A stretch of 64,000 nt of DNA, from NCBI RefSeq assembly GCF_052425735.1, contig NC_135764.1, forward strand, positions 30,070,001-30,134,000, written 5' to 3'. Below are positions 24,830-64,000 of this stretch, piece after piece. This DNA comes from Oculina patagonica. Lineage: Eukaryota. The translations under genes and the position numbers were made by a program. The notes under the pieces are model-generated. The model worked only from the letters and a program-made list of their open reading frames with translations. It made no database searches and was not told the DNA's origin. How positions within the stretch are numbered: position 1 is the first letter of the stretch; each line of letters opens with the position of its first letter.

Positions 24830-25107
24830 CACAGGGCGAAATGGCAAATTTCCTGATCTTTAAGATAAAATTAAATGTCACTTAAAGATAATAAAAATCT
24901 TTAAGTTAAGCATTAAAATCTCTTAAAGTTATTAAAGGTCTAAGCTCCCTTTAAGTGACCTTTAAGAGACCTTAAAGGTCCAAATCGGAACTTAAAGTTA
25001 ATAATTCCTTTAAGAAATTTAATTTTCTACTTAAAGGTAAGGTAAATGTAATGATTCCTTTAATAGTCTTTAATTTGCATATTAAAGGTTAAGTAAAAAA
25101 TTATACC
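24830..25107 (+). mobile_element. Left terminus and TTAA-rich subterminal repeats of a CACTA/EnSpm-like element
   Basis: Begins CACAGGGCGAAATGGCAAATTTCCTGATCTTTAAG exactly where GPCR homology ends; dense CTTTAA/TTAAAG motifs. Confidence 0.65.
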
Positions 25108-25223
25108 TTTGAGAGAAAGCCTTTGTGAAATTCTGTTCGCCGAAGCCAAGAAAGTATTACTGAACATCATAATGATATGGGAAAATCTCATTTGCATTTA
25201 CTTTCAACACACTTAATTAATAT

Positions 25224-25277
25224 ACACGACTACAAAAACTAGTTTCGTCCGAAGACCTCGTCAGTTGGTAGCCGTAT
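25224..25277 (-). ncRNA. Type I minimal hammerhead ribozyme (left arm)
   Basis: Reverse complement of 29190-29243. Confidence 0.82.
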
Positions 25278-25543
25278 GCTGTTAAAAATTTTAAATTTCA
25301 GACGACTTCATATAACATTGCACAAAGAATAACTCTAGTATCTAGGCAACTATAACGCTATATAACTCAAAAAACAGAAAAAAAAAATTTGCTAACGAAA
25401 TCTAAAATAACAACCAGAATAGTATTAAACATAGCAGTAACTAAAAACAAAATACTTAATATATCTAAAGAATAGGAAAACAGAGTTCAGAGTTCAGTTT
25501 CTATTGTGCAATAAAATACAAAGAAATGCTTGTAGCTAGAATT

Positions 25544-27490
25544 TCATGATTGCGTGACAACCGCTCTCGGGATCCGGAAATACGCCCACTCTTCTTTCGT
25601 GTTGATTAGTTGATCCTCTTTGGTTTGATTGATCATCACCGATTCCGTGATCTCCCTCAACATCGCATCATTCTGAAACGTTCCTGTGACATTCATGGTG
25701 AAGCCTGCGATGTTACCTGCATGAATATCACAGCAATGTCTCCACAAGACAGAACTTTCCTCGCGCTGTTCAAGGGCTCTGAGATGTTCTTTGCCGCGAG
25801 TGTAAGCACTCCGGGATGTTTCGCCAATGTACTTATGGCGGCAAATCTGACAGACGAGCTCATAAGTAACACCTGTGCTACGACAAGACCCTTTTCCTCC
25901 AGTGCTACAGATCAGACAGTCGGTGTTATTGCACTGCCTTTCTTTAAACGGGTCTGACCTTTGCAGCATTCGTTTTAGGGTTAGGCCTGACTGCTCGATC
26001 ACTTTGATTCTGAAGCCTGTTTCCTTGATCTCTTTCATGAACTGGTTTCTTAATTGAGATCGCGGTGTTGCTGGTACGAAGATCACACTATCGAAACCAC
26101 CCTTTCTGTACCAGGTTTCTCGCTTTCCCCGCCTCTCCTCAGCTCGTTCTAGCTGTTTCCAACTTCTTGGTCGGTACAGTGGTTGTTCGCCGCTAGCATC
26201 TAGCTCAATCAGACGGTTGTAAGCTTTCAGTGCAGAACGTACCACTTCCGTTCTGAACTTCTGATCGTAGCCGGAGTACTGGAGGCGCAGCATCATGTGG
26301 TTCACATGGCTGACTGCAGTCTCCCAGGGAAGCTCTCTACTGCAGTTCAGAAGGATCCTCAGGATTTCTTGTGTGAGAACCGTTCTCTTACAGCTCCAGG
26401 GCAATGCTGACCTTGCATTGATCACACACTTCGAGGCCACATCCTTAGAATAAAACTCATGTAACACTACACACACCCCACTCTCTTCCTCTCCTCCACT
26501 TTCCATATTTCTCCTTTCCATCCAGACTCTCAAATCTAGTATGGGTAGCTTACCATCTTCATGTCGTGAAGGGTAATCAACCTCCAACTCAATTGATGAG
26601 TGAATGTTGTTGCCAATCTTCTGGACTAAAGCCATACATCTTCTATCGGCGCTGACGTCCCGTTCCTGCTCTGCCGCGCTGCCATCCTCGATCACCCTAC
26701 CCTCACTCTCAACAAACTTGAGTCCTGCCTTGGGAGCGTTCACAATGACATTGATGTCATCAACATACCTCTTGTACATCCTCAACCTCAACCCGTTTTC
26801 ATTCATCTTGATTTTAAACTGCCTGTCCCACCAGACCATGAACAACTGAGCTAAAACACCAGTAAGTTCAAGACCTATGGCACCCCCCTTTGACTGCAGT
26901 TTTATCTGCTTGTCGAACGTGTACACGTGGTTCTTCATAATGAAGGAGAGAACTATCTTTAGAGCCTCAGTGAACATCTTTCTGATGGTTTCCTCATCAG
27001 CTATTTCAGTTGGTGGCAGCCAAGGTTTGAACCTCTTGCTCTTACTCTCATCTAAGGCGCAGCCTGTAACAGTGGGTGGGCGGCCTCTGTTGGTCTTGCG
27101 CCGTGGACAGAACTGTAGTAACCCGACATCTCTCAACTCCGCTTCAGTTCTGTTCAGCGCTAGATATAACCCTAGCTCCTCAGCGTCTACACCGACCACT
27201 TGTACATCACTCGTGTAGAAAACTTCACACGCCTTCTCTACTGTAAAAGATATGTCCAGACTTGGGTACAAAGCCTTCACATCAGCCGAGCCAATAATTA
27301 CTTCCTCAGTGATGTTGTTACTATTCACCTTCCTGAAGTCTGCCAACATCTCTTCAGTGTTTAAGCACACAGTCTCCTCCTTCTTCCACACTTCCGTTAA
27401 GATCATACTTATAAGATGGGACAGATTTCTGTTGTAGGCTGATACTGCTCCACAAACTGGTCGAACCGGTGGGCCACTGTTTTGATCAGC
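25544..27490 (-). CDS. Penelope-like reverse transcriptase + GIY-YIG endonuclease, 5'-truncated (Neptune/Naiad-like)
   Basis: RPVCGA, DVKALYPS, QSKGGAIG, YVDD, LPILD; Cx4Cx2C linker; GVTY...YIGET...R..EH; frame open from the 27490 junction, first Met at 27406. Confidence 0.93.
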   Translation of the reverse strand, partial: ADQNSGPPVRPVCGAVSAYNRNLSHLISMILTEVWKKEETVCLNTEEMLADFRKVNSNNITEEVIIGSADVKALYPSLDISFTVEKACEVFYTSDVQVVGVDAEELGLYLALNRTEAELRDVGLLQFCPRRKTNRGRPPTVTGCALDESKSKRFKPWLPPTEIADEETIRKMFTEALKIVLSFIMKNHVYTFDKQIKLQSKGGAIGLELTGVLAQLFMVWWDRQFKIKMNENGLRLRMYKRYVDDINVIVNAPKAGLKFVESEGRVIEDGSAAEQERDVSADRRCMALVQKIGNNIHSSIELEVDYPSRHEDGKLPILDLRVWMERRNMESGGEEESGVCVVLHEFYSKDVASKCVINARSALPWSCKRTVLTQEILRILLNCSRELPWETAVSHVNHMMLRLQYSGYDQKFRTEVVRSALKAYNRLIELDASGEQPLYRPRSWKQLERAEERRGKRETWYRKGGFDSVIFVPATPRSQLRNQFMKEIKETGFRIKVIEQSGLTLKRMLQRSDPFKERQCNNTDCLICSTGGKGSCRSTGVTYELVCQICRHKYIGETSRSAYTRGKEHLRALEQREESSVLWRHCCDIHAGNIAGFTMNVTGTFQNDAMLREITESVMINQTKEDQLINTKEEWAYFRIPRAVVTQS

Positions 27491-28921
27491 TTCACTGAGG
27501 CTCTAAAGATAGTTCTCTCCTTCATTATGAAGAACCACGTGTACACGTTCGACAAGCAGATAAAACTGCAGTCAAAGGGGGGTGCCATAGGTCTTGAACT
27601 TACTGGTGTTTTAGCTCAGTTGTTCATGGTCTGGTGGGACAGGCAGTTTAAAATCAAGATGAATGAAAACGGGTTGAGGTTGAGGATGTACAAGAGGTAT
27701 GTTGATGACATCAATGTCATTGTGAACGCTCCCAAGGCAGGACTCAAGTTTGTTGAGAGTGAGGGTAGGGTGATCGAGGATGGCAGCGCGGCAGAGCAGG
27801 AACGGGACGTCAGCGCCGATAGAAGATGTATGGCTTTAGTCCAGAAGATTGGCAACAACATTCACTCATCAATTGAGTTGGAGGTTGATTACCCTTCACG
27901 ACATGAAGATGGTAAGCTACCCATACTAGATTTGAGAGTCTGGATGGAAAGGAGAAATATGGAAAGTGGAGGAGAGGAAGAGAGTGGGGTGTGTGTAGTG
28001 TTACATGAGTTTTATTCTAAGGATGTGGCCTCGAAGTGTGTGATCAATGCAAGGTCAGCATTGCCCTGGAGCTGTAAGAGAACGGTTCTCACACAAGAAA
28101 TCCTGAGGATCCTTCTGAACTGCAGTAGAGAGCTTCCCTGGGAGACTGCAGTCAGCCATGTGAACCACATGATGCTGCGCCTCCAGTACTCCGGCTACGA
28201 TCAGAAGTTCAGAACGGAAGTGGTACGTTCTGCACTGAAAGCTTACAACCGTCTGATTGAGCTAGATGCTAGCGGCGAACAACCACTGTACCGACCAAGA
28301 AGTTGGAAACAGCTAGAACGAGCTGAGGAGAGGCGGGGAAAGCGAGAAACCTGGTACAGAAAGGGTGGTTTCGATAGTGTGATCTTCGTACCAGCAACAC
28401 CGCGATCTCAATTAAGAAACCAGTTCATGAAAGAGATCAAGGAAACAGGCTTCAGAATCAAAGTGATCGAGCAGTCAGGCCTAACCCTAAAACGAATGCT
28501 GCAAAGGTCAGACCCGTTTAAAGAAAGGCAGTGCAATAACACCGACTGTCTGATCTGTAGCACTGGAGGAAAAGGGTCTTGTCGTAGCACAGGTGTTACT
28601 TATGAGCTCGTCTGTCAGATTTGCCGCCATAAGTACATTGGCGAAACATCCCGGAGTGCTTACACTCGCGGCAAAGAACATCTCAGAGCCCTTGAACAGC
28701 GCGAGGAAAGTTCTGTCTTGTGGAGACATTGCTGTGATATTCATGCAGGTAACATCGCAGGCTTCACCATGAATGTCACAGGAACGTTTCAGAATGATGC
28801 GATGTTGAGGGAGATCACGGAATCGGTGATGATCAATCAAACCAAAGAGGATCAACTAATCAACACGAAAGAAGAGTGGGCGTATTTCCGGATCCCGAGA
28901 GCGGTTGTCACGCAATCATGA
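27491..28921 (+). CDS. Penelope-like RT/GIY-YIG, shorter 5'-truncated inverted copy
   Basis: Same protein sequence as the left copy from FTEALKIV to the stop; lacks the first catalytic Asp motif. Confidence 0.88.
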   Translation, partial: FTEALKIVLSFIMKNHVYTFDKQIKLQSKGGAIGLELTGVLAQLFMVWWDRQFKIKMNENGLRLRMYKRYVDDINVIVNAPKAGLKFVESEGRVIEDGSAAEQERDVSADRRCMALVQKIGNNIHSSIELEVDYPSRHEDGKLPILDLRVWMERRNMESGGEEESGVCVVLHEFYSKDVASKCVINARSALPWSCKRTVLTQEILRILLNCSRELPWETAVSHVNHMMLRLQYSGYDQKFRTEVVRSALKAYNRLIELDASGEQPLYRPRSWKQLERAEERRGKRETWYRKGGFDSVIFVPATPRSQLRNQFMKEIKETGFRIKVIEQSGLTLKRMLQRSDPFKERQCNNTDCLICSTGGKGSCRSTGVTYELVCQICRHKYIGETSRSAYTRGKEHLRALEQREESSVLWRHCCDIHAGNIAGFTMNVTGTFQNDAMLREITESVMINQTKEDQLINTKEEWAYFRIPRAVVTQS

Positions 28922-29189
28922 AATTCTAGCTACAAGCATTTCTTTGTATTTTATTGCACAATAGAAACTGAACTCTGAACTCTGTTTTCCTATTCTTTAG
29001 ATATATTAAGTATTTTGTTTTTAGTTACTGCTATGTTTAATACTATTCTGGTTGTTATTTTAGATTTCGTTAGCAAATTTTTTTTTTTCTGTTTTTTTGA
29101 GTTATATAGCGTTATAGTTGCCTAGATACTAGAGTTATTCTTTGTGCAATGTTATATGAAGTCGTCTGAAATTTAAAATTTTTAACAGC

Positions 29190-29243
29190 ATACGGCTACC
29201 AACTGACGAGGTCTTCGGACGAAACTAGTTTTTGTAGTCGTGT
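29190..29243 (+). ncRNA. Type I minimal hammerhead ribozyme (right arm)
   Basis: Stem I ATACGGCTACCAA/TTTGTAGTCGTGT; core CTGACGA(G); stem II GTC-TTCG-GAC; GAAA; palindromic CTAG stem III; GTT cleavage triplet at 29228-29230. Confidence 0.85.
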
Positions 29244-29377
29244 ATATTAATAAAGTGTGTTGAAAGTAAATGCAAATGAGATTTTCCCATATCATTAAGA
29301 TTTTGAGAGAAAGCTTTTCCAAAAAAATGGTGGATATGTATCTTTAAAAGTATTTAAATTGTATCTTAAAGGTACCC

Positions 29378-29580
29378 CACAGAAAAAAATGACAGATTTC
29401 CTGATCTTTAAGAGGCACTCAAATAGCACTTAAAGATCATAAAAATCTTCATATCGTATGAAAACCTTTTAAAGCTATTGAAGAACACAAATCCCTTTAA
29501 GTAACCTTTAAGATGCCGTCAAGGTCCAATTGTCCAAATTGAGGAAATTCTTTGGTAAATGTAATGACACCTTTAAGAGT
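29378..29580 (+). mobile_element. Second CACAG-type left terminus
   Basis: CACAGAAAAAAATGACAGATTTCCTGATCTTTAAG... colinear with 24830-25070. Confidence 0.6.
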
Positions 29581-29969
29581 CAGGGTGCTTCGAAGTCACT
29601 TTGGGTTACAAAGTAAGTTTTAATTCTTGAATTCTCGATCTTCTCCAGGCGATGTTACTAAAGTAATTCGCAGGAACAATACAATATTTATAGCTACCCT
29701 CATAAATCCGAGGAGAAATAAAGGTGGTGTGTCTATGTGTTACAATGTTCCGAAAATGTGAAAGTCTAGATGTGCTGTTTTGAACAAAAAATGTCGCCGT
29801 ATACACTTCAAATAGATCATCAAATTCGGCTCAATGTAACTATCGACCTTGTTTTAAAAGAAGCATTCCTTGCTTTTATTATTGACAATAAACCCTCTTT
29901 TACAAGAACTGATTATAAAGGGGAAACTAATTAATGCCCTAGCATTTGCAAGTGAACTGATTACATTTC

Positions 29970-32900
29970 AGGACTGATTAAAGCAAAAGCTTTGCATGCA
30001 AGTTATCTGAAACAATCAGGTATATGTTACCCATGACAGTAGAGGACTGATTAAAGCCATAGATTTGCAGTTATCTGTGACTATTAGGTATACTCTACCC
30101 ATGATAGTTCAGGTCTGATTAAAGCAATTGCTTTGCATGTTAGCTATAATCGTCAGGTATACACTACCTACGACAGTATAGAACTGATTAAAGCGATAGC
30201 TGTGCATGTTATCTAAAACCGACAGGTATACTCTACCCACGACAGTATAGAACTGATTAAAGCAATAGTTGTGCATGTTATCTATAACCGACAGGTATAC
30301 TCTACCCACGACAGTATAGAACTGATTTCGGCAATAGTTGTGCATGTTATCTATAACCGACAGGTATACTCTACCCACGACAGTATAGAGCTGATTAAAG
30401 CGATAGTTGTGCATGTTATCTATAACCGACAGGTATACTCTACCCACGACAGAAAAGAACTGATTAAAGCAATAGTTGTGCATGTTATCTATAACCGTCA
30501 GGTATACTCTACCCACGACAGTATAGAACTGATTAAAGCGATAGTTGTGCATGTTATCTATAACCGACAGGTATACTCTACCCACGACAGTATAGAACTG
30601 ATTAAAGCGATAGTTGTGCATGTTATCTATAACCGTCAGGTATACTCTACCCACGACAGTATAGAACTGATTAAAGCAATAGCTTTGCATGTTATCTATA
30701 TCCGACAGGTATACTCTACCCACGACAGTATAGAACTGATTAAAGCAATAGTTGTGCATGTTATCTATAACCGACAGGTAAACTCTACCCACGAAAGTAT
30801 AGAACTGATTAAAGCAATAGTTTTGCATGTTATCTATATCCGACAGGTATACTCTACCCACGACAGTATAGAACTGATTAAAGCAATAGTTGTGCATGTT
30901 ATAGATCTATAACCGACAGGTAAACTCTACCCACGACAGTATAGAACTGATTAAAGCAATAGTTTTGCATGTTATCTATAACCGACAGGTATACTCTACC
31001 CACGACAGTATAGAACAGATTTAGGCAATAGCTTTGCATGTTATCTATAACCGTCAGGTATACACTACCCACGACAGTATAGAACTGATTAAAGCGATAG
31101 TTGTGCATGTTATCTATAACCGACAGGTATACTCTACCCACGACAGTATATAACTGATTTAGGCAATAGCTTTGCATGTTATCTATAACCGTCAGGTATA
31201 CACTACCCATGACAGTATAGAACTGATTAAAGCAATAGTTGTGCATGTTATCTATAACCGACAGGTATACTCTACCCACGACAGTATAGAACTGATTTAG
31301 GCAATAGTTTTGCATGTTATCTATAACCGTCAGGTATACTCTACCCACGACAGTATAGAACTGATTAAAGCAATAGTTGTGCATGTTATCTATAACCGAC
31401 AGGTATACTCTACCAACGACAGTATAGAACTGATTAAAGCAATAGTTTTGCATGTTATCTATAACCGTCAGGTATACACTACCCACGACAGTATAGAACT
31501 GATTAAAGCAATAGCTTGGCATGTTATCTATAACCGTCAGGTATTCTCTACCCACGACAGTATAGAACTAATTAAAGCAATAGTTGTGCATGTTATCTAT
31601 AACCGACAGGTATACTCTACCCACGACAGTATAGAACTGATTAATTAAAGCGATAGTTGTGCATGTTATCTATAACCGACAGGTATACTCTACCCACGAC
31701 AGTATAGAACTGATTTAGGCAATAGCTTTGCATGTTATCTATAACCGTCAGGTATACACTACCCATGACAGTATAGAACTGATTAAAGCAATAGTTGTGC
31801 ATGTTATCTATAACCGACAGGTATACTCTACCCACGACAGTATAGAACTGATTTAGGCAATAGTTTTGCATGTTATCTATAACCGTCAGGTATACTCTAC
31901 CCACGACAGTATAGAACTGATTAAAGCAATAGTTGTGCATGTTATCTATAACCGACAGGTATACTCTACCCACGACAGTATAGAACTGATTAAAGCAATA
32001 GCTTTGCATGTTATCTATAACCGTCAGGTATACTCTACCCATGACAGTATAGAACTGATTTAGGCAATAGTTGTGCATGTTATCTATAACCGACAGGTAT
32101 ACTCTACCCACGACAGTATAGAACTGATTAAAGCAATAGCTTTGCATGTTATCTATAACCGTCAGGTATACACTACCCACGACAGTATAGAACTGATTAA
32201 AGCAATAGTTGTGCATGTTATCTATAACCGACAGGTATACTCTACCCACGACAGTATAGAACTGATTAAAGCAATAGCTAAGCATGTTATCTATAACCGT
32301 CAGGTATACTCTACCCACGACAGTATAGAACTGATTAAAGCAATAGTTGTGCATGTTATCTATAACCAACAGGTATACTCTACCCACGACAGTATAGAAC
32401 TGATTTAGGCAATAGCTTTGCATGTTATCTATAACCGTCAGGTATACACTACCCACGACAGTATAGAACTGATTAAAGCAATAGTTGTGCATGTTATCTA
32501 TAACCGACAGGTATACTCTACCCACGACAGTATAGAACTGATTTAGGCAATAGTTTTGCATGTTATCTATAACCGTCAGGTATACTCTACCCACGACAGT
32601 ATAGAACTGATTAAAGCAATAGTTTTGCATGTTATCTATAACCGACAGGTATACACTACCCACGACAGTATAGAACTGATTAAAGCAATAGTTGTGCATG
32701 TTATCTATAATCGACAGGTATACTCTACCCACGACAGTATAGAACTGATTAAAGCAATTGTGAGCGTAGAACGTTACTCACAGGACGATCGTTAAATCCC
32801 ACGTTAGAACAGAAAATTCTTGACGCGCTTTTAGAAACATTTGCTACAATAATGATGCTCACGACGATAAGGATGTAAACAAAGTTTATTGAAGCGAGGC

Positions 32901-34180
32901 GATGAGACGTTAACAAACGAAGCGATGCGTAGCGAAGCGATGAGTAGATGTACAAATGATTCGGTAAAGCGGTACAAAGTGGTACTAAGCGATAAAAGCG
33001 GTAGAAGCGGTAGAAGCGGTTTCGAAAACTAAAAAGTAAATACAGCGAAAACTACAATTAGACTAGCTAGAAACTACCTTAAACTATGAAAACAAACTTC
33101 GGAACGATGCAAAACGACTTATAAAACGTAACATGCACAAAGTAAAAAGACTTACTTCTGTGTCCGCGTTAGGGATTTCACAGCGTTGACGTTGAGCCTT
33201 ACTTTTGATCTTAACACGATGACACGTTGACTAGAACTCAGAAAGTTTCCTGAGCACGTTCGACAAAATGCTAGCTAATACAAAGGAAAATAGATTTCTT
33301 TGTTTGTAGATAATACGTAGGCAAGTATATCCGCGGCAAAAAACCACAAATGCTAAAGATAATAACGCAAAAGAAACTACAAAGGGATCGAAAGGAAATA
33401 CGGAAAACCAGAAAATATTTGGCAGTAACAGCAATAGCTTTGCATGTTATCTATAACCGTCAGGTATACTCTACCCACGACAGTATAGAACTGATTAAAG
33501 CGATAGTTTTGCATGTTATCTATAACCGTCAGGTATACTCTACCCACGACAGTATAGAACTGATTAAAGCAATAGTTTTGCATGTTATCTATAACCGTCA
33601 GGTATACTCTACCCACGACAGTATAGAAATGATTAAAGCAATAGCTTGGCATGTTATCTATAACCGTCAGGTATTCTCTACCCACGACAGTATAGAACTA
33701 ATTAAAGCAATAGTTGTGCATGTTATCTATAATCAACAGGTATACTCTACCCACGACTGTATAGAACTGATTAAAGCAATAGTTTTGCATGTTATCTATA
33801 ACCGTTAGTTATACTCTACCCACGACAGTATAGAACTGATTAAAGGGATAGTTTTGCATGTTATCTATAACCGTCAGGTATACTCTACCCACGACAGTAT
33901 AGGACTGATTAAAGCAATAGTTTTGCAAGTTATTTATAACCGCCAGGTATACTCCACGCACGACAGTATAGAACTAATTAAAGCGATAGTTTTGCATGTT
34001 ATCTATATCCGACAGGTATACCGACGACAGTTTAGAACTGATCAAATTGATAGTTTTGCATGTTATCTATAACTGTCAGGTATACACTACCCACAACAGT
34101 ATAGGACAAATTAAAGCGACAGTCTTGCAAGGTGTCTTTAACCAAAAGGTAGGCACTACCCGTGATAGTACAGGACCATG
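29970..34180. repeat. 69-bp tandem satellite, about 50 units
   Basis: Unit CTGATTAAAGCAATAGTTGTGCATGTTATCTATAACCGACAGGTATACTCTACCCACGACAGTATAGAA (starts at 30184, 30253, ...); degenerate edges; outlier units near 34930-35045. Confidence 0.97.
32759..33430 (-). mobile_element. Solo LTR (672 bp)
   Basis: TG...CA ends; 5-bp TSD GCAAT at 32754-32758 and 33431-33435; minus-strand AATAAA near 32885. Confidence 0.85.
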
Positions 34181-34448
34181 ACGAGCTTAGTCCTCCAAAA
34201 AAATTATGCAAATTAGATTTAATCTCCTTAGTAGAGAATATTTCTCCATTTAGGGGATTGAAATCAGAAACATAAGTAAGTAGTTCACACCTTGAACTAC
34301 TGCAATGTACAGTAAGGTGTCAGTTGCGGTATCTCTGTAGAAAGTAAAAAACATATATTAGCTGGATTCTGGGTTGATTTTGTTGTCTTAAAATCGCAGG
34401 TTACATCAAACTGAATGAGGTTTGCCAACCACCAGTTCCTATGAAGTA

Positions 34449-34700
34449 CTGTATTTATTCAATCAAGTGCTGGGCGCTTATTCGAGGTGGACACTTATTC
34501 GAGGCTGGGCGCTTATTACATTTTCGCCATTTCTTGAGAGTAGAAAGTTTGTTTTACAACAAAACAATGAATAATAATAAAACATGAAGTTGCACAAAGC
34601 AACTGTTCATTGAAAGTGTCTATAAAATGCTAAGAAAACTCGGTCTTCAGAGAACCCTCTTAGTAGTACTTAGTCAATTTCAATCTCTATTAGTATTACT
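34449..34700 (+). mobile_element. Mariner-type MITE, left fragment
   Basis: TA+CTGTATTTATTC start; GGGCGCTTATTCGAGG repeats. Confidence 0.55.
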
Positions 34701-36461: not shown

Positions 36462-37638
36462 CATAGGCGTACGGGCCGGGGGGGCTGGGGGGGCTGCAGC
36501 CCCCCCAAATTTTGGGCAACTCAGATTTTTTGGGCAGCAAGAGAAATTTGGGCAAAGTCAGTTTTTAAAGTAGTTTTCTTTTTTTTCTCGAAAAGATAGA
36601 TATGTTCTATTTTAACCTGAAGTCGGCGTGGTTATTATTTTCTTGACAATGTGAGACCAGATTCACTAACAAGATTTACCCAAGATTCCTTATTTCGAGA
36701 GGCGCTGATATCTTCGTAACTGTAGGACGTAAATTTCCGGCGGCCACCATTTCAAGTAGAGACGTCAGTGAGAATCGATACGTCCAGAAAGAACGTGGAA
36801 TCTAGTGAGATGTTAAATTTTAAGAACCAGTGAATGGACAGTTTGATGAATGCACCAAAGAAGCGCTGCTTGTACGTGGAAGCCAGCAGTTATTATGAAC
36901 TTCCTTTTCTAAACGTTATAACAAATAAATTCATATTTCCTTTAATAATGGACAAAATGATAGTCACTCAATTTGGGAAATTTATGTCACGGTGAAACAC
37001 GACCCTGATAAAGAAAGCTTCTCCCGCGTTGCTAAATTTTACAAAATCGACGGCGAGATTCTGAAAGCCGAGCAGAAAATGTACGCGAGTTTTCGTCGTT
37101 TGCGCGGATTAGGCTACATGACTGTTTCAGAAATGCTGGAGACAATGCACGAGAATGGTCTATTTGATATGTCTCCACAGTTTTCTTATGTGGTACATAT
37201 CCTCGCAGAGCATGATACTTGCTACATGTACATCGTGTTCTGCAGAAAGATCATTGTGTGCATTGCGCAGATTGAAAACTTACCTCAACAGCACCATGGG
37301 GCAACGTGTCAGTAACATCGCACTTATTAACATTGAAAGGGCATATGCCAAATCTGTAGTCAACAATGAAAAGATTGTACCATTGAAATCTTCGGCCATC
37401 GAAATGGCAGATAGCTATTTCTTTTAAGGTGATTTATGAGCTCATATGATAAATTCATATGCAAGAACTGCACGAGAATATTTTCTCTTCATATGTAGGC
37501 CTATGGTAGCTTATATTAGTGCATCGCAGTACCCTCGTTTCTTCTCGACTTTTTCGTAAAAATTTGGGCAACTTGCGATAATTTTTTGGGCAAATGGTTC
37601 ACCGCCCCCCCTGGCAAAAAATTGCCCGTACGCCTATG
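36462..37638 (+). mobile_element. hAT deletion derivative with transposase C-terminal remnant
   Basis: TIR CATAGGCGTACGGGC; 8-bp TSD CAAAGAGG; frameshifted dimerisation-domain motif TSCSAERSLCALRRLKTYLNSTMGQ...IALINIE within 36992-37427. Confidence 0.92.
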
Positions 37639-43287: not shown

Positions 43288-43416
43288 TTAATCGAATAAA
43301 CACTTAATTGTGAAAGTACAGAACTAAGACTGACACTGATGTAGAATAATTCTTCACCTTTAACAGTGGTTATTTGGCAAATGGTTTGGGTTCCAACCCT
43401 TCAACTACTATCATAG

Positions 43417-52300: not shown

Positions 52301-55300
52301 ACAATATATACTGCCTCTTGTGCGCTTATTTCAACACTGTTCAAGAATTTGTTACCAATGTCACGCACTTGCTGTTTAATACCCAAATTTCCTTCTCGAG
52401 CTTCCTCACATGCTTTTCTTAAAAGTTCACTCATACCTCTTTGCGCCTTTGATATGTAAGAAACAACATACATCGCACAAGAGTAGATATCTAAAATGAA
52501 TTGAACATCCATGTTTGCTCTCCATGCAAGCAGGCAGTGCTTGTTGTAATTATTGATTCTAAGTTCATTTGGCTTTCTTTTCAAAAATATTGTTGCCCTA
52601 CTTAAGGAAGATCTAATGGCTAGAATATAGACCTCTTCTGTGACACCAAGCTTTTCGAGAAGTTCGTCAAATGAAATATCTTCTCCTTCCCTCATTGCAT
52701 TAAGTTGCTCATTGATTTCTTTCCAAGTTGCTTTGTGCTCGTCCAAAAGACTAATTTGGTCACTTTCACTTAAAGGATACAATATTCGAGTGCTTTTCAT
52801 TGGAGGCTGTGGAAAATTAAACCTGCATTTTTTCTCAAACCTTTTTTTACAAGTAAATGAATGTTTATGTTCCTGACGAGAAACTAATTCATCTAACTCA
52901 CAACTGTTTCCAGGTTTTGAACAAGTGATAATTTTATCAACAAAATTGCAAATTTTTTCATCTGAATCTTCACCAAACTTTGGTGCACCTTCAATCCATA
53001 AAAGCATATGTATATGTGGTGAGCCACGCTGTTGAAATTCAACACGATAAAACCAATCTGCTATTTTTCCGAGAGGCGCACAATCACTATGCAAAAATTT
53101 AACAATAAATTGCTGAACTTGGAAGTCAAAATGTCTTGCACATGTGATAGGATCACTTTGTATTAACCTTGACTTTTCCTCCCACGACAATTTGCATTTA
53201 ATTCATTATCACTGTATATTTTATGATCAGTCAATTCACCTAACATCCTTAACAGATGATTCCACTTTGTTTCAGCTGCAGAAAAGCTACAGAAAAGTGT
53301 TGCAGCTCCAAGTTGCCTTATCATGGCAAATAAATCTTTCTTAGCCTTCTCAAAGTAGGGTGGTGAACCACGAAGAGCTCTCAGAAATCGGTAGCCTTCA
53401 TCCAAATGAACTAATTTGTCTAAAGCACCTTCTTTTTTTAACTCGCCTGCTGTTAGTCTCTTTCCTTTTGTTTTATGCTTTCGTAGAGCAATCTGGCATT
53501 TGCCTAATATTATTTTCATTTGCAGCTTTTTCAGTTTAAAAAAAATATTTTCGATACACTTAGCAACTCTGCGATCAGAACGCCTTAACTCTGATTTGCA
53601 AATGTCACTATAATACACAGGCACACTTCTTTCCTTATTATCTGCTCTCACTTTGCCATAGAATATCCCAGGATATGCTAGTTCTTCGCAATATTGGTCT
53701 TTAAACACACTTATTGGATGATTGCTTTCACCTGGTGCAAAGTTCAAAACCTTTTCACGCTCACAATCTTCTACAAAGTCTGGAGATGTCAACATTGTAT
53801 CCAAAGTACCAGCACACATTTCTGATTCATCCACCTCATTCCAAGAATCTTCTTTTTCCCCTTCAGATTGAGTAGGACAAGAATCCTTAGAAAGATCTCT
53901 GCTAGAAAAATGCAAATCTTTTCCACTACCTGAGCATCTTGATACATCCAAAGTCACTGGTATACCAACTAATGCTTTTAGACTAATAGGGTTTGCTGAT
54001 CTATACCCTTTTGAACACACTTCAACAAGAACAACATTTTGTGGCTCACGAATTTTATATCTGAACAGTTTGATTACAGTGGAAGTACTTACATTAACTG
54101 CTGCTTCACTGAATTCAGTAGATAAGTCATCTTCCAGTGGTAATAGATCATGTACAATGACCATGTGCTTTCTAAAAAGTGTTTGCTCTTTTTCCCAGGC
54201 ACTACACAAAGAACAAAAAAACACCACTTCATTACTATTACAGTCATTGTGATGGAATACTGGCAGGTAGTTACTCTCTTCACAACATTCACTATCAGTT
54301 TCTACTGCATGATCATACAACATATGACTTTTTAATTTCATCCAGTCTATTAACACCTGTTCACAAGCAAGGCAAATAAAAACTTGACCACATTGAAATG
54401 GAAACAATCCACTATTTTGTGACAAAGATTCCACATTGTTATTCATTGACTCATTAGAAGCTACAGGTGCATTCATTTCTCCAATGTTGCTTGAACTGCA
54501 GCAAGGTCTATCATTAATTGTGTCATTTTCCTTACACCCTGTAAACAAATCATTCCAATCTGGATTAAGTTTGATGCCTTCTTGTTGATATAGTACACCA
54601 TTTTCAGTCAGCCATTCAGCCGCTTCAAAAACTTTGGATGGTCTTATATTTTGAGATAGGACATAGTTTTTGTATTTTAATTTTCTCTTCAGTTGCACTT
54701 TGATAGTCTCTGTTTCAGACGAAAGTCTTGGTAAAATAGTTACAGTATTAACAACATCAGCAGGAACATTTACTATGTTGCCATGGATTTTGAACTGCTT
54801 TCCTCTAGCTGCTTCATGTATCTTTTGAAAGATCAACCGTGGTGATACAAGTCTCCATTCTAGTTCTGTCAAGTCTAAATGGTCAGGTTTAGATGGAAAA
54901 TTCATTTTATTTTGCACTGCACATGGAGGAATTTTATTCTGCTTTAGGTGTTTATAACACGTATTACAAACCCATTGAGCTGTACAACATTGCTCACTTA
55001 TTTTTATGCATTTTAGCACAGCTTCATTATCAAGTTTTAGTACAGTTTGAGCTCTAACAAGACTATGTTTGTACCATAACTGATCACAACATGTACAGAC
55101 AAATGTTGGCCCTGTAGCAACCAGTTCACGAAAAATGGTAACTAGCTCATCGCAAGACATTTGGTTTCTATTTGTATAGGCTTCTCTCCTTTTTCTCAAC
55201 CGTTCTTCTTTCTGTTGCTTTGTTTCAGTTTCTTTTGCTTTTCTTCGGGATTCTCTCTTTTTCTTTAGTCTCCTTTCTCGTTGTTCATTGCTTTCAGTTT

Positions 55301-55398
55301 GCTTGTTTTTCATGTTTTGTTCTCTACTTTCCTTTAACCTATTTTCTTTCTGCTGCTTGGTTTCACTTTCTCTTTTTTTTCTCATTAGTTCCCGATAC
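49306..55398 (-). pseudogene. Helentron (Helitron2-type) Rep-PIF1 helicase-AP endonuclease polyprotein, one frameshift, 5'-truncated
   Basis: Charged N-terminal repeats; CTCC...CNTC; Rep motifs VEFQQRGSPHIHMLLW and YVVSYISK; helicase GGAGVGKS, DEVSM, GDLFQL, TIHRSQG; EEP motifs NARSL, GIYRSP, GDFN, IDHIY, SDH; ORFs 53163-55685 and 49306-53190 join by a frameshift near 53190. Confidence 0.93.
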
Positions 55399-57916
55399 GG
55401 TAGTATCGAAAACGAAGACCTCGAAAACGAAGACCTAAGACCTAAGACCCAGTCGAAAACTAAGACCCAGTCGAAAACTAAGACCCAGTCGAAAACTAAG
55501 ACCCAGTCGAAAACTAAGACCCAGTCGAAAACTAAGACCCGTACGAAAACTAAGACCCATACGAAACGAAGACCGTATATACGAAAACTAAGACCCATAC
55601 GAAAACTAAGAGTGCGTGACATTAATAATAATGACAGAATAATATTGAAGCAGACTGAGCGTACTGAGAACGTACTACTGATCAAAAATCTAGACTTGAT
55701 CGAAAACTAAAACCTGATCGAAAACGGTTGCTGCGTCACAGAAGAGACAGCCAAAGTCTCCAACAGTAATGCACCGTATCGAAATCTTAACGCGCACAAT
55801 ACTTGCTTCAATAAACTTCGCTACCCGATTATTATTTCTCGCTTTACATCCGCGTAGAAGGGTGCGGAGAGGGGGGGGGGGGGATTGTGCTGGGATGCTC
55901 TCCAATGATGCCTTTAGAGGCCATGACATTAGGGGGGACTGAGTATCCTATATCCCATTAATTTTTGGAATAAATATCCCTTATCGCGAGAAGGCCGCGC
56001 GAGGAAAACTCGAGGAGAAAACTCCAAGATTTTTTCCTCGCGTGGCCCCCTTGCGCCTTTCGCGTTTCTCCCATACGCGCGCTAGAAACTATACGGCGCC
56101 TGCTACGCAGGCTACCTAAAAACCAACTTGTTCACGTAGTTTCGTAAAAAACGCCAAAGAATCTATTACGTATTCTAAGTAGACATGCACTCGTTTCGCT
56201 CATGCCAGGGTTATGAAACACACCTTGTTTAATTTGTTTCTTTCCTGCGTATTAACACCCTTGCGGCTTTTTGTGATCAAAATTATTCTTAGGAAAACAA
56301 ATGTTTTCTCTAAGCAGTTCCTTTCAAAAGGATTTCTCAGCAAAGAATACGCTAACTGAGTTATGTCTAACTGTCTCGTTTGAAGCCAAACCTGCTCCCA
56401 TTATACCTCAGTGTTTATGATCCCGTGGGTAACATTAGGAATTGAACCATGTATGAACGATGAGCGCTTATACAATCCTTTTGTCTTCCAACTTTTGGTG
56501 CTTTGTTTTTGTTTCTTTGCCAAGCCGGTATAAATGAGAGGTATTCAAGACTAGTACCTTTTAAATCGCTTTCACGCGTAACCGATTTATCAGATGATGT
56601 TTTCTTTTATTTGAAACTAGAAACGCGTCATCTTTAGTGACCTTTAGTGTCCTTTACATTGTCGATATTGTTGTTTACATGAACGTGTGCCATCGTTATT
56701 CGTTTCGAAATGTCTCGAACTGTCATGTATATGATTTGACATTGAACGAGTACATTTCATTTTCTTCGCAGTTTTTTGGATCGAAACCGCAATGTCAATT
56801 AAAGGGATGGATCAGCCAGTAAGAATACAAACTGGACACATCTGTTTGAACTGTACTGTGCAGTTGGGATCTGCAGTGCAGTTGGGATCTGCACAAGTCA
56901 TTGCGACAGTGTAGTGTCGTATATTTGCCAAACAGGGCTACATTGTGTATAGATCTCGTCAGTTTGCGAGGTTATCTAGTTTTACTTAGAGTTTGTTTCA
57001 GTTTCAATGATAATGAATGATAGATTTTTCTAAATTTAGTAAATAAAGGTTTTGTTAGTGCTTCTTATGTGTAGGCCAAGATGTTTTAATTTTACTCATG
57101 TAGCGCGTAACGAGGCGTACTCACTTCAAAATTAAAGACAAATATTTGTAGGATTTCAATGAAACTTGATCGATACGTTCTCAGTACTCGTCTGCTTCAA
57201 TGTTATTCTTATCCAACACTGATTCGTAGAGTACAAACATCGCGCAAAACGAGTACAAGTGTCACTCGATATTTGTACTTGTCTCATTTCCCCGACCAAA
57301 AGATTAAAAACCTTGGCAAGTCATGTGTGACCTAGGCTCCCGCAGTGCTATCAGAATGGAATTTTCAAAAGGAACAGCATCTTTTCATTCCGTTTACGTG
57401 TTGAAATAACTGTAGCGTTCCATTTGTCGAAAAATTCTCTCCGAAAATTCCATGTAAATGGAAAGCGCTCATTGATTTTCGATTTCAGTAGTACGTTCTC
57501 AGTACGCTCAGTCTGCTTCAATATTATTCTGTTATTATTATTAATGTCACGCAACTCTTGGTAACGCTGGTTTTGGCCGGGTCTTCGTTTCGTATGGGTC
57601 TTAGTTTTCGTACGGGTCTTAGTTTTCGTACGGTCTTAGTTTTCGTATGGGTCTTAGTTTTCGTACGGGTCTTAGTTTTCGTACGGGTCTTAGTTTTCGT
57701 ACGGGTCTTAGTTTTCGTATGGGTCTTAGTTTTCGTATGGGTCTTAGTTTTCGTACGGGTCTTAGTTTTCGTACGGGTCTTAGTTTTCGTATGGGTCTTA
57801 GTTTTCGTATGGGTCTTAGTTTTCGTATGGGTCTTAGTTTTCGTACGGGTCTTAGTTTTCGTATGGGTCTTAGGTCTTAGGTCTTCGTTTTCGGGGTCTT
57901 CGTTTTCGATACTACC
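55399..57916. mobile_element. Foldback-like element with modular long inverted arms
   Basis: Ends GGTAGTATCGAAAACGAAGACC and its reverse complement; 18-bp arrays (CGAAAACTAAGACCCRTA/CAGT) at ~55440-55610 and ~57590-57870; inner unique inverted repeat ~55610-55690 vs ~57475-57560. Confidence 0.88.
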
Positions 57917-58661
57917 ACTCACCAACACGTAAAAGCGTTAAACCAAATATAATGTAGACCCTTGACCTGTCGCGTTTGCGAGTAAGTCGATTTTGTATGT
58001 ATGCACGACAAGTTCTGAAAGAGTTTGTAAGTGAGTGCAAAAATATAACAGCTACGTACAAAACTACAAGTCGAGGCTTCTCTTCTCACCAAACAGCAAA
58101 ATCACCACAACCCAAGATGGCGGATCCCAAAGAAATGAAGGAAACAATAACACACGTGACCCATATGCCTAGTTCCCAGTGCCACTCGGTTGGAGTAATT
58201 GTAACATTGCCCGTCCACGGGCCACAACATATAGGCGTCTGTCACCGCCTAATCACCGCCTAAAAAGTCGAAGTTCTGAAAAGCTGTCGGGTAAGTGTTT
58301 GAACGTCATTTTGTGTTATATCACCAGTTTACTTTATTAATTACCGAATGTACACCATTTAATATATATTCAAAACAAAATGAATGTTCTGTGTATCTTA
58401 TGGGATTATAATTTTGCTTTCAGATGTTTATAGTCAGCTTATAACTGTTCGGTCGTTATATTCAGCCCAGTCATGAGTCTGGCAGTCTAGTTTTATATGC
58501 CAGAGTCACACAGGAAGCCTAAATATAATTTAACTGTTGTTAGCTGCGGTTGTGGATTCTATTCTATATCGAGGAACAGTGTCCGGATTTTAGCATTATT
58601 TTGAACTGAAGGCTCAAAACCACTTTTCTAGATCTTAGATAAGCTAAACTAAACAAATCTC

Positions 58662-58956
58662 TGTCAAACACTGATCGCCCTAGCAACAAGCCATAATAAG
58701 TTCAGATTTATAACATGATTTCTCAATACAAAGATTCAAAATAATTTTATTACACTGTTTGCTGTCAGTGTAATAATGCAGTGCTAATATTTTCCAAAAC
58801 AAATTAATGATGATTTTGTTTTCGAAAATATTAGCACTGCATTATTACACTGACAGCAAACAGTGTAATAAAATTATTTTGAATCTTTGTATTGAGAAAT
58901 CATGTTATAAATCTGAACTAATTATGGCTTGTTGCTAGGGCGATCAGTGTTTGACA
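58662..58956. repeat. 295-bp near-perfect hairpin
   Basis: 133-bp arms 58662-58794 and 58824-58956, one mismatch seen. Confidence 0.92.
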
Positions 58957-58974
58957 TAATAAAAATTTGGTTTG

Positions 58975-59058
58975 TATCTGATCTTAAAATCGGTGGTAAA
59001 AACGTATAAAACTGAATTCAGTTTTATACGTTTTTACCATCGATTTTAAGATCAGATA
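58975..59058. repeat. 84-bp loopless palindrome centred on GAATTC
   Basis: TATCTGATCTTAAAATCG...GAATTC...CGATTTTAAGATCAGATA, one mismatch. Confidence 0.92.
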
Positions 59059-59350
59059 TGGCTTCTTTGTGTTTTCTTTAAAAAATTTCTTCAGTGTCTG
59101 ACATTTGCAGACTGCAGAGTGCAAAATGCAGAGTGCATAGCAGGCTAGCCTTGAGTGTAAAGTTTGCATTCTGTTTTCTGCTGATTAATTATTAATGACA
59201 GACACCGAATTTCTTATAGACAAAATCACGAAAAGTTTTCTGATAGACACAGAAGGGACACTTCAGGGAAATTTCTTATTGCCCTGTCTTGAATTTACTT
59301 GAATATTCATCACAGGATCATTAGGTTGCATCTAGGGGATGCTGGCCCCA

Positions 59351-59666
59351 CAGGGCTCAAAATAATTTTCGGACAGTGTTCGGTCATGTTGTCCAGCCAG
59401 ACAGATTTTACATGTAGCTCGGTCATGTGTCATTTCTGAACGGTCAAAATATTGAAAATAGCACTTTCAAACTACCACTCATTTCTGCTGTTTTAGCTGC
59501 AACTTTTATGAATAGATCACTTTCTAATGCCCTTCTGGTCATCAGTTATCATTCTTAAAGCCATGTACGTGACCGGTCAAAATGACCGGCAAACTGAAAC
59601 TTTGTCCCGACAAATTGTCATCTTGGCTGGACATTGTCCATTGACCGGCCATTAATTTGAGCCCTG
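59351..59666. mobile_element. hAT-like MITE
   Basis: TIR CAGGGCTCAAA / TTTGAGCCCTG; imperfect flanks CCCCA/CCCTA. Confidence 0.6.
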
Positions 59667-59673
59667 CCCTATG

Positions 59674-59834
59674 GGCCATTTTCAACACAACACTCTGCTG
59701 TCCCTCCAAAATTTTACATAAGCATTGTTTTCAATATCTCTTGTTGTCCCAAGAGAAATTGAAAACAATGCATATGCAAAATTTTGGAGGGACAAGTCAC
59801 AACAAAGAGTATTATGGTATTTTTAAAAATGGCC
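59674..59834. mobile_element. Palindromic MITE related to 3304-3492
   Basis: GGCCATTTT...AAAATGGCC ends; shared core GCATTGTTTTCAAT / GAGAAATTGAAAACAATGC. Confidence 0.7.
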
Positions 59835-61054
59835 TATTCAGCTGAATAGCAGTAGAAGGGAATGTCATTAGTTTACGTTCAGTAATGTTCAGCCTGGTTT
59901 CCTTGCAGCTAGCTTTACACCGGTTTGTTTGCAGTTAGCTCGACATGGTTTGTTTGCAGTTGGCTTTAATTTGTTTGTCAGGGCAATTTACTATCATCTT
60001 TCTGCCCTTCCAACAAAAAGGTTCACCTCATCTTGAAAAGGATAGAAATGTGATTTTTTAAGTCCAAGGCATCTTAATAAAATGAAAAACAGTGTTACAG
60101 AAGCCTGAACAATTTATCAATATATTTTTATCAATATGATTACATCTATCATTGAGGCAATTAGAAACATTTTTTTGTTTTTTGCTTTAGTTGACAGCCA
60201 TGCATCTCAGCAAGAAATGTAAACACACTAGGAAGAGTAATCAAGAGACAAAAACTGTATATATGGAAAAAGGTCTTAATTGAGGTAAGTGTCCTTGCTT
60301 GTAATTGTCTTACTTTAATCTCATGGCATATCTAATTTTATTGTATGTCTTGAGAATGGCATGCCAATGATGGTAAAAGTGTTGATTCTTTACTATAATT
60401 TGTTCATGTATTTGATTTACCAAATCTAAAAAGATATATATTTTATTTTTAGGGGCACTCGAGTGCTGTGGCTATGTCCAAACAAAGCAAAAAATGCAGG
60501 CAACAAGGCAGGAAAGGAGAGGTGAGGTTTCACTGGAAACACACTAGTTGCCACTAAATCTTGAAAAGATTTGCCTAACATGAAAACTAGAGTAAACAAC
60601 AATTTAGCTAGCATTCTCAGAGCAGGGAACTGAGCAGCAAAATTGTAAGAAGCAAAGAGGTTTGGTTTTGTTTTACAGTGTAACTACACTGGGCTCATGT
60701 TAATATGTATTTTTGCCCAAGAAATCTGTGGCCCCTGGCTCTATAGTGACAGCTAGCCCTGCATTGCATTCCAAGAAAAAAATATTTCCTGAACTTTGCC
60801 ATTAATCCAAGCTCATTCAATTTTTTTTAAGTGTAACTTTTGAACAGTTGGGTTATGAGTTGTTGACCAGGGCATAACCTGAGTTACCCGGTAACTACCA
60901 TGCATAGAAATCTTTGTAAAAATCTCACAAATATGAGACTAATAATAAGTGTATATTCTATAAAATTATATTTCACCATTTATCATATAAGTACACAACA
61001 TTGATACAATAACATGCTTTTATATGGTGTATATGGCAAAGTTTGGTGTACTTG

Positions 61055-61243
61055 TGAAAAAACAGCTCCCTTTTAATTGTTGGTTGACTGTCAGTCGTCT
61101 GTCAACCGATATATTTATTACAAATTGAACTTTGTAAAAGTAAAATTTATGTTTTGGAAAAATTGTCAGTAGACTGTTGGTGGCGTGTTGGTAACCTGTT
61201 GGCCGACAGTTGACCCACAGTCGGTTACAGGGAGCTGTTCTTC
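61055..61243. mobile_element. Degenerate MITE
   Basis: Inverted AACAGCTCCC / GGGAGCTGTT; CTGTTGG/CCGACAG internal motifs. Confidence 0.45.
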
Positions 61244-62115
61244 TAAGGCCAGGGGCCATAGATTTTCCAGGCTAATATCAACATGAGACCAGGGTAATTA
61301 CACAGAATAATAGAACCAAAACTGTTAGCTGCTTGCAGCTTTGCTGCTCAGTTCGCTGTCTACTAACCCATAGCTAGTAGAGCCATGAAACATCAAATCT
61401 TGGTGACAGCCCTGGCAATGTATAGCTTGGTCAACATCTCAACATCTCATAGCAAATTGACCATTATCCAAAATTATATATTTTTTTAAAACAACTTCAA
61501 TCAGGACCTTGTTATTGTCCACTTCTTACACTAACTAAGCCATACTTCTTTACCTTTTAGGACACTACAATTTTAACATACACTACTATGGGAATGTGGT
61601 GGTTTGAGGCTGTCAGTGTTTTTAAACAATATTGAATAAAAAGCATTTACACTCAAGGAGCCCAGATGTTAACAATTAGAACAGTTACTGTACAATGTAT
61701 GTTATACAGTCAACTCTCTGTAAGGTGGGCACTATTTGGACCGGCCTCAACTGTCTGTCTTAAAGAGGTGTCCGCCTCCCTGGCATGGTATAAAAACATA
61801 TTTTTTATCAAGTGTTGACATGGTAATGATCATTTTTGTTTGTAGGGATTAACCAAAGGAGCCTTGGCATTAGACCATGTTGAGAAATTGGAACAAGCAG
61901 AAAGGAGTTCTTAAAGAGCTTAAATGGGACTATGAATATTTACAGTATTATATTTTCTTGAAATATTTGACATATCTGATAGATTATCAATATTGGAGCA
62001 ATACTGGTATGTCTTTTCAGTAGAAATTGAAAATTACAGAGGTTTTTGTTAATGATTATTTTCCAAGATATATACATCAAACTTACCTTGACAGTTTTTT
62101 TTTCTTTAAAGGACC

Positions 62116-62151
<36 letters not shown>

Positions 62152-62349
62152 GAGAATTGCTGTATTATATTTTTCTGTGAGCACAAAAAGGCTCACCATA
62201 AAACTCAGTGCTCAAGGTAATTAAACAGACTCCCAATAACGCAACTTGCAGCAATGCAATAAGGCTCCACTTCACTGTACATTTTTAAATGAATTCGATG
62301 CCATTGATGGCAGATGCTGACTAGGAACCTTTAAGCTTTCATAGACTGA

Positions 62350-62771
62350 AACTACGTTTACACGGACACGGTTTCATTTGTAACCGCATCGAAAGCGATG
62401 CGGTTACGCCTTTCGTTTACACGGCACCGATCGAAACTACTACTGTAACCGGGTCGTTTTGAAAACGCTGTCAAAAGTGGAGCGTTTTCAAAACGATACG
62501 GTTTCGTTGTCGTGTAAAAGGTCAAAAACGGCAAAACCGCATCGATTTGAAAACGGCCATGTATTTTGGCACGAACTGGCTGGCTTGCGAAGGGTAAACA
62601 TAGCGAAACAAGCATAGAGAGCAGCGCTCGGCTTATACAATCACATTCAAAAACAGTTGGAAAATCGTTAAATAGGCTCCGTGTAAACACTTCGAAACTG
62701 TGTCGTTTTCGATGCGGTTTCAAGGTCATGAAACCGTGTCGATTGATAACTGTGTCCGTGTAAACGTAGCC
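62350..62771. mobile_element. PIF/Harbinger-type MITE
   Basis: CTACGTTTACACGGACAC / GTGTCCGTGTAAACGTAGCC; TGA on both sides. Confidence 0.75.
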
Positions 62772-63439
62772 TGAAATAAAGCAATTTGCAACATGTGTTA
62801 CAAATATTGTATGTTTATTTATCATTAAAAAAAATGATTGGAACCGTTACATTTAGCATATTTTTTAATAATTTAGGACATAAATATATTATTCATTTAT
62901 AGAGCTAAATTGGAAAAGTTGAATTATTATAAATATCTGAGAGATGCAAATGCGGCCATACTACTGAAAATCTGAAAAAAAATTCAGGCTCTGAGCATTG
63001 CTACTGCTGGACGCACATTCACTTATTTTTTAATTATTATATTTGACAGAAGTATTTATTTCTGCCAGGCAGGGTCACCCACCGGTATTCAAGTAACACA
63101 TGTACAGTTACAATATAAATTGAATCTATCTTTTATATGAAGAATTTTTGAGTTTATGGAGATAATTGTTACTGTGATTGTTTTGTAATTACAACAAAAG
63201 TAGATCTGTCAACACCTTAGTTAGTGATGTAGGTTTGTATTAAAAGAATTACAGAGACAATAAACTTTTATTACTTTGAAATCTTACGTGAATTGTGTTA
63301 GTAGACATAATGCTAAGAAGGTCCTTGCAAGAAGATTCCCTTGATGTTAACTTGCACATTCATTGCTTTTGGATTGTACCCTTTACAGATCCCAGATGTA
63401 CATTAATGATGATGTACATCACATTCAAATAACTCAGTA

Positions 63440-64000
63440 AAAGGTTATCTTTCCCTGACATTAAAATTAATGGACATTAGATGTGTCATCGTATCTGAAA
63501 GAGTGATATCCTTCCTTACTGTTCCTTTAAGTGGAACATTTAAATAAACTTAAAGTTTATCCTTTAATTACATTTAAGTGACATTTAATGGGGCATAGAA
63601 TCTTAAAGATTCCTTTCCAGTTCTTTAAGCTGCCACTTAAAGTCTCTTTGAACTTAAGGTTATCTTTACATTACATTTAAGTGACATTTAACTTGGCAAA
63701 GTATCCTAAAGATTCCTTTCTTGTTCTTTAAGCTGCCACTTAAATGTTCTTAAAGCAGTCTTAACTGGTCCTTTAAGTTAAACGCTTTAAGTCACTTAAA
63801 CGTGACCATTCCTTAACCTTTAAGTCACATTTAATGTGTCCAAGCATCTTAAAGATTTCATTTAATTCCTTTAATTTATCACTTAAAATTTCTTAAAACA
63901 TCATTTAATGCATCTTTAAGTGCATTTCTTAAAGATGCATTAAATGGTTCATTATTGAATTTAAGTGATCCACTTAAAGATTAAGAAAAGAAACATTTAA
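63440..64000 (-). repeat. TTAA-rich subterminal repeats, inverted relative to 24830-25107
   Basis: TTTAAGTGACATTTAA at 63573 and 63676 is the reverse complement of 24871-24886; runs off the window end. Confidence 0.65.

Follow-up and report, generated by a model that had tools for sequence, protein, structure and literature searches.

A CACTA-like element without a transposase of its own splits a receptor gene of the coral Oculina patagonica and most probably owes its 39-kb length to nested insertions

Transposons of the CACTA/En-Spm superfamily share a characteristic anatomy, with 3-bp target-site duplications (TSDs), terminal inverted repeats (TIRs) that start with CAC, and dense subterminal repeats (PMC8978399). 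Members of the group are known from animals, for example SmTRC1 of Schistosoma, for which 2-bp duplications have been reported (PMC1636069). Here we describe a locus of the stony coral Oculina patagonica at which a gene for a G protein-coupled receptor (GPCR) is cut in two by an element of this type. The stretch analysed, hereafter the window, spans 64,000 nucleotides (G000:C7:30070001-30134000) and was used to search the genome (529 Mb). In all likelihood, a low-copy, non-autonomous CACTA/EnSpm (CMC) element with a backbone of about 12 kb split the receptor gene and was subsequently swelled by nesting. The result is an ordinary nested transposon pile, not a giant carrier of cargo.

The interrupted gene is recognized through its paralogs. 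The DNA of the open reading frame (ORF) at 24141-24863 shows 84-86% identity with five paralogs in the genome, all intact or nearly so; the similarity runs to ...LCFLPMA in the sixth transmembrane segment (TM6) and breaks exactly at 24830. When the two receptor halves were compared with the paralogs separately, each as its own query, the 5' half matched paralog residues 20-249 (184-188 of 227-229 residues identical) and the 3' half residues 250-313, the two abutting with neither gap nor overlap. The second half lies in the DNA directly downstream of the window (L021). There the 3' terminus of the element, ...ATTTCGCCCTGTG, falls at L021:95 (G000:C7:30134095) and is followed by AA, by TTT and by GACTGTTTTG..., with the receptor remainder reading LTVLSLALELNLDVKNSFAAPWIRTFGMLNSLFNPLIYCWRLKKMRRF... 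to the stop. Translation from L021:99 yields LTVLSLALELNLDVKNSFAAPWIRTFGMLNSLFNPLIYCWRLKKMRRFVFRTSPAVAPSTHAQNDV and a stop codon; the missing part of the receptor, LTVLS...NSLFNPLIYCWR... to the stop, thus stands directly beyond the terminus, which lies 95 bp past the window end. The insertion severs the last 65 codons (the end of TM6, TM7 and the tail) from the remainder of the GPCR, and both halves are still open for reading. At the corresponding site the intact paralogs read ...LCFLPMALTVLS... (LPMALTVLS), and in five cases out of five the matches of paralog DNA to the two query halves have exactly 3 nt in common. Taken with the abutting halves, this identifies gcTTTgactg as the original target and TTT as the duplicated triplet.

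The split gene also differs from its paralogs at its start (window ~24076-24141), where it has a 6-nt in-frame insertion. Nineteen nucleotides upstream of the ATG at 24141, a 2-nt TG insertion creates a TGA and a frameshift, which disconnects the first 19 codons of the paralogs from the ORF at 24141. Either the gene has suffered a further lesion here, or its start has moved to the internal ATG.

The inserted element extends from window position 24830 to 95 bp past the window end, a length of 39,266 bp. Its TIR is a perfect 13 bp, CACAGGRCGAAAT, composed of the 5' end CACAGGGCGAAAT and of L021:83-95. All aligned copies share the same 5' boundary, the C of CACAGGRCGAAATGGCA at 24830, outside which their flanks are mutually unrelated. 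A genome search with window positions 24831-25130 returned nine loci whose 294-bp match, at 97-99% identity, starts with the first base of the query, besides a small number of weaker loci. At the opposite end, the related copy L024 is colinear to base 64000 and then matches the next 95 bases downstream (L021:1-95). The genome contains 43 occurrences of the terminus, taken as a 17-mer with at most one mismatch, as against 7 of the reversed control, so its recurrence is not due to chance. Of the 39 occurrences of the motif CTTTAAG/CTTAAAG in the whole element, 26 are terminal, 10 of them within the initial 295 bp and 16 within the final 700 bp. Tandem Repeats Finder (TRF) reports arrays in both subterminal regions (24856-25097 and 63547-63744), and a 17-bp inverted match between 24870-24886 and 63573-63589 is exact.

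Much of this had been anticipated. The original prediction, made from the window alone, placed the end of the GPCR homology in TM6 exactly at CACAG, noted the inverted 17-bp match of the ends, and proposed a single CACTA-like element, a type known for TIRs that start with CAC, for subterminal repeats and for TSDs of 2-3 bp; boundary, match, ends and sibling copies all agree with this, the TSD being one of 3 bp (TTT). It expected CTGTG, a TT/TTT duplication and the GPCR remainder past position 64000, and CTGTG, TTT and NSLFNPLIYCWR were indeed found just after the window end. It also maintained that no intact host gene lies between the two receptor halves, and in the ORF list and the Pfam results we found none: the long ORFs in between are all those of mobile elements or repeats.

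Pairing of 5' and 3' ends across the genome uncovered eight further complete copies, nine with the one in the window. Their sizes and TSDs are 6,775 bp (AAA), 11,115 bp (AGA), 11,508 bp (ATT), 12,368 bp (CGA), 13,173 bp (TAT), 13,763 bp (GAC), 15,607 bp (TTA) and 24,159 bp (CTA). The 3-bp TSDs are thus perfect in eight siblings out of eight, and most lengths fall between 11 and 14 kb. Other hits of the terminus are unpaired, for example those at C2:19455736, C3:19510513, C5:3617137, C11:20574051 and C11:10875766. Between the window copy and its siblings, identity is 97-99% at the termini and 96-97% over the best-aligned unique segment of the backbone, with some other segments lower. Chained alignments to the siblings define a colinear backbone (24830-25124, 29302-36461, 37639-37826, 58262-62351 and 62767 to the end) of about 12.4 kb, which is within the usual size range of the family. 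The nested parts add up to some 26.9 kb, or 68%. The siblings lack all segments outside the backbone and show exact empty sites in their place, and a TSD or termini of its own mark every nested insert. The 69-bp satellite behaves differently. The window holds 40 + 10 copies of it by TRF (29970-32760 and 33430-34176), every sibling carries it, and genome matches of at least 80% identity occur only inside copies of the family. It is a true family component.

We propose that one copy of this family integrated by cut-and-paste into a TTT in the stretch that encodes TM6 of a GPCR, an intronless rhodopsin-type paralog belonging to a tandem cluster, duplicating the triplet in the process. At least six mobile elements would later have landed inside this copy and brought it to its present 39,266 bp: the Penelope-like palindrome, the 664-bp insert, the hAT miniature, the Helentron, an inner CACTA within the Helentron, and a small miniature element. 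Movement of the family would require a Transposase_21 provided in trans, and the subterminal repeats would serve as protein-docking sites. The nested insertions are presumed to postdate the arrival in the GPCR gene. The Helentron and the inner CACTA do look younger than the spread of the outer family, since each matches its siblings at 99-100% identity, as against a divergence of 3-4% in the best-aligned unique segment of the outer backbone. Their youth fits nesting after arrival and does not prove it.

The alternative that fares best is that the whole 39-kb unit is a giant cargo-carrying CACTA, which entered the GPCR gene already loaded. This was the view of the original prediction, which described a cargo transposon of more than 39 kb. 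With both TIRs intact, the composite is formally mobilisable; moreover, cut-and-paste movement removes the donor, so that failure to find another loaded copy does not disprove it. The satellite is in fact present in every copy, and to this extent the idea of cargo was right. However, all eight siblings are devoid of every nested insert, the Penelope palindrome and the Helentron included, and show exact empty sites in their place; each insert bears its own TSD or termini; and the contrast between the near-identity of the Helentron and inner CACTA with their siblings and the divergence of the outer backbone runs the same way. Loci with the same ends, for which the prediction had called, were found, but the only cargo that they share with the window is the 69-bp satellite, and the great size must be put down to secondary nesting. 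No trace of transposition of the whole 39-kb composite was seen, with the reservation that a cut-and-paste element leaves behind no donor copy by which this could be judged strictly. Altogether we consider entry in the loaded state improbable.

It is also worth considering that the family might belong to another cut-and-paste superfamily (Transib, PIF/Harbinger or Academ), its likeness to CACTA being superficial. No transposase is encoded by the element, and its superfamily is read from its ends alone. The longest backbone ORF outside the satellite has at most 128 codons, Pfam gave no match on the backbone ORFs, and a tblastn search with the genome's CACTA transposase detected no transposase remnants in the window or at any sibling locus. 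In the absence of both long ORFs and transposase similarity, the family is non-autonomous. Positions 4-5 of the outer TIR are AG, where CACTA elements have TA or TG, and the CACAGG terminus resembles the CACAGTG of Transib and of recombination signal sequences (RSS), as does the CACAGTGCGAAAT subfamily on contig C8. Transib elements have CACAGTG-type termini and 5-bp TSDs, and those of PIF/Harbinger a 3-bp TSD with a preference for TWA (TTA/TAA). Yet the TSD is 3 bp long in nine copies out of nine, not 5 bp, and among CGA, AGA, AAA, ATT, GAC, TTA, TAT, CTA and TTT a single one fits TWA. Moreover, the same 13-bp TIR bounds another element, likewise with a 3-bp TSD, that codes for a Transposase_21, the enzyme of CACTA transposons; TIRs of this type thus belong to the CACTA superfamily. 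Membership of another superfamily is accordingly very improbable. On contig C8 of the same genome, the termini at C8:2274702, C8:2411692 and C8:2486425 read CACAGTGCGAAATGACA, a variant of the family end whose first seven bases are the RSS/Transib-type heptamer CACAGTG. That the two ends could instead be separate insertions or products of a rearrangement, a view to which the two extra bases at the 3' junction and the mosaic interior lend some colour, is barely credible, given that the two flanks abut as parts of a single gene, share one orientation and show a TTT on either side, and that the order and orientation of the backbone match the siblings end to end.

The element that shares the TIR is a candidate helper for the family. 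It occupies 14,968 bp (C2:26407527-26422494), has the same 13-bp TIR (CACAGGACGAAAT) and an AAA TSD, and carries an intact open frame for an 890-aa Transposase_21. The genome contains 29 Transposase_21 loci in all, and the nearest transposase relatives of the 890-aa protein, at C2:20281793 and C8:21461899, are only 78% and 76% identical to it. On the strength of the shared TIR, we infer that an enzyme of this kind mobilises the window family in trans. The helper candidate has internal tandem arrays of its own, with PTGSN/AQMTQ-like repeats in translation. One could even envision, though it seems rather unlikely, that the 39-kb composite is still competent to transpose with its passengers, both TIRs and both subterminal regions being intact, and that the family, which has a satellite and no transposase, is moved by an enzyme that recognises nothing more than the TIR, in spite of the difference in subterminal motif. 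If true, a family moved through the shared 13-bp TIR would be a vehicle spreading satellite seeds around the coral genome.

Several observations weigh against the explanation that we favour, namely a backbone element mobilised in trans, inserted in the receptor gene and later filled by nesting. The subterminal motif of the candidate helper is GTTTCCG/CGGAAAC and that of the window family CTTTAAG; the DNA that the two have in common is limited to the TIR, and a search with 352 ORF pieces revealed no coding sequence shared by the helper candidate and the window backbone. No autonomous copy cognate to the window family was found among the loci examined, and the C2 element may not be the true helper. 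At the insertion site itself, two extra A's (L021:96-97) separate the 3' TIR from the 3' TTT. They are present in none of the eight siblings; they could be junction filler, have come along from the donor flank or have been inserted later. An empty allele was sought in the assembly as well and none was found, the flanks matching only paralogs at no more than 89% identity. Lastly, because cut-and-paste leaves no donor, the order of arrival first and nesting afterwards is not provable. In four public sequencing runs the contigs were all short and interrupted at the repeat, and those that came loose at position 24829 resembled paralogs. One contig, from a run under another organism label, has the family 5' end at ~98% identity beside a different flank.

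Table 1. Features of the split receptor gene and of the inserted element (window coordinates; L021 is the DNA directly downstream of the window, L022-L028 are sibling copies)
Feature	Position	Strand	Remarks
GPCR 5' half	24141..24829	+	start codon to TM6 (...LCFLPMA); 7tm_1, E 1.6e-18 (Pfam, ORF 24141-24863)
TSD 5' copy, TTT	24827-24829	+	last 3 bases of GPCR 5' half
Outer CACTA 5' TIR, CACAGGGCGAAAT	24830..24842	+	homology boundary in 10 other copies; reverse complement of L021:83-95
5' subterminal region, CTTTAAG/CTTAAAG-rich	24843..25124	+	97-99% identical in 8 other copies
Penelope-like palindrome	25125..29301	.	17-bp TSD 25108-25124/29302-29318; empty site in siblings
Outer backbone including 69-bp satellite	29302..36461	+	colinear with siblings L022-L028
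Insert in satellite, 664 bp	~32760-33423		window-specific; 6-bp duplication AGCAAT
hAT-type miniature element	36462..37638	.	15-bp TIR CATAGGCGTACGGGC; 8-bp TSD CAAAGAGG; empty site in siblings
Outer backbone segment	37639..37826	+	96-98% identity to siblings
Helentron	37827..58261	-	Helitron_like_N, PIF1, Exo_endo_phos (Pfam); empty site in siblings of outer element
Inner non-autonomous CACTA, inside Helentron	39839..49131	.	25-bp TIR CACTGGAAAAGTTGAAAATTTACAT; TSD AAA; inverted 44-bp subterminal arrays
Outer backbone, no long ORFs	58262..62351	+	colinear with siblings
Unclassified miniature TIR element, 415 bp	62352..62766	.	TIR CGTTTACACGGACACGG; 6-10 bp TSD ...CTGAAA; empty site in L023, L025
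Outer backbone and 3' subterminal repeats	62767..64000	+	sibling L024 colinear to end; 3' end common to 12 loci

Of the nested inserts (Table 1), the Helentron contains ORFs for Rep, a PIF1 helicase and a C-terminal endonuclease at 49306-55685 in two frames. Other copies measure about 10.2 kb and are 100% identical at both ends (C6:24851154-24861351, C1:29037904-29048087 and C2:19343220-19353404 of G000), on account of which the family has probably been active very recently. The Rep/helicase frame of the window copy is split (49306-53190 and 53163-55685), and a 9-nt repeat of the Helentron terminal sequence (TCACCGCCT) is present at 58253-58261. A 5-bp TSD considered for this insert was dropped, the apparent overlap being an A-run in a T/A-rich target. 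Intact Helentron copies are free of the inner CACTA, and their empty site shows an overlap of 3 nt. The inner element has the canonical CACTG terminus and belongs to a family unrelated to the outer one; its siblings, such as those at G000 C5:14903133-14911972 and C4:43141190-43148901, are 7.6-8.8 kb long, with ends 99-100% identical at no fewer than eight loci. The nest is therefore three levels deep, from CACTA to Helentron to CACTA.

The palindrome near the 5' end has arms that are 100% complementary across 1606 nt. Its ORF gave a sub-threshold RVT_1 match (Pfam, E 0.017), and the Penelope label derives for the most part from motifs recognized by inspection and from the original prediction. 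Rfam at its gathering threshold returned no match in the whole window, so the hammerhead ribozymes proposed for the Penelope ends are unconfirmed at this threshold. The element at 36462-37638 is labelled hAT because its 15-bp TIR and 8-bp TSD are as in hAT elements; a Dimer_Tnp_hAT match was sub-threshold (Pfam, E 0.071).

The split gene has neighbours of its own kind. Between positions 816 and 18369 of the window, rhodopsin-type receptor ORFs without introns form a tandem cluster in which three or more subtypes are represented (816-1811, 5626-6168, 8457-9428, 11048-12037, 14276-15337 and 17461-18369). The ORF at 5626-6168 is truncated; that at 17461-18369 is a paralog of the split gene, with a degenerate C-terminus that lacks the NPxxY region. 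A run of about 500 N's, an assembly gap or masked sequence, falls within the cluster at 12300-12800.

The locus documents the knock-out of a receptor by a DNA transposon within a GPCR cluster of a coral, an instance of gene-family turnover by way of mobile elements. It also illustrates in detail how an element of apparently giant size can be taken apart into a backbone of ~12 kb and a three-level nest, and the near-identical copies of the Helentron and of the inner CACTA elsewhere in the genome suggest that several families of DNA transposons are active or have been so very recently. What is known of the transposon classes involved is unchanged by these findings.

Compared with described CACTA/En-Spm elements, SmTRC1 among them, the coral element has the expected CAC-starting TIRs and several hundred base pairs of direct and inverted subterminal repeats. 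Like other members of the superfamily it also has internal tandem repeats, and a Transposase_21 is encoded by a TIR-sharing element of the same genome. Its 3-bp TSD is that of CACTA elements at large (PMC8978399), in contrast to the 2-bp duplications of SmTRC1 (PMC1636069). It departs from the type in that its terminus is CACAG rather than CACTA or CACTG, in the lack of a transposase of its own and in the different subterminal motif of its candidate helper. A satellite array housed inside the element and present in its copies recalls the 'Jozin' CACTA of Chenopodium (PMC8978399, PMC7320549); here, however, the host is a stony coral, and the 69-bp satellite, at the 80% identity level, forms no free-standing arrays outside the family. 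The interruption of a coding gene by a very long CACTA brings to mind the 20.5-kb Tgmt* of soybean in F3'H (PMC2613891). Tgmt* is reported as a putatively autonomous element, whereas only about 12 of the 39 kb in the coral represent the element itself, the rest being nested. Finally, the succession of insertions, each with its own TSD, is that of transposon nests in general, here with three levels; but unlike the nests of heterochromatin, the coral nest sits in a recently split receptor gene of a gene cluster.

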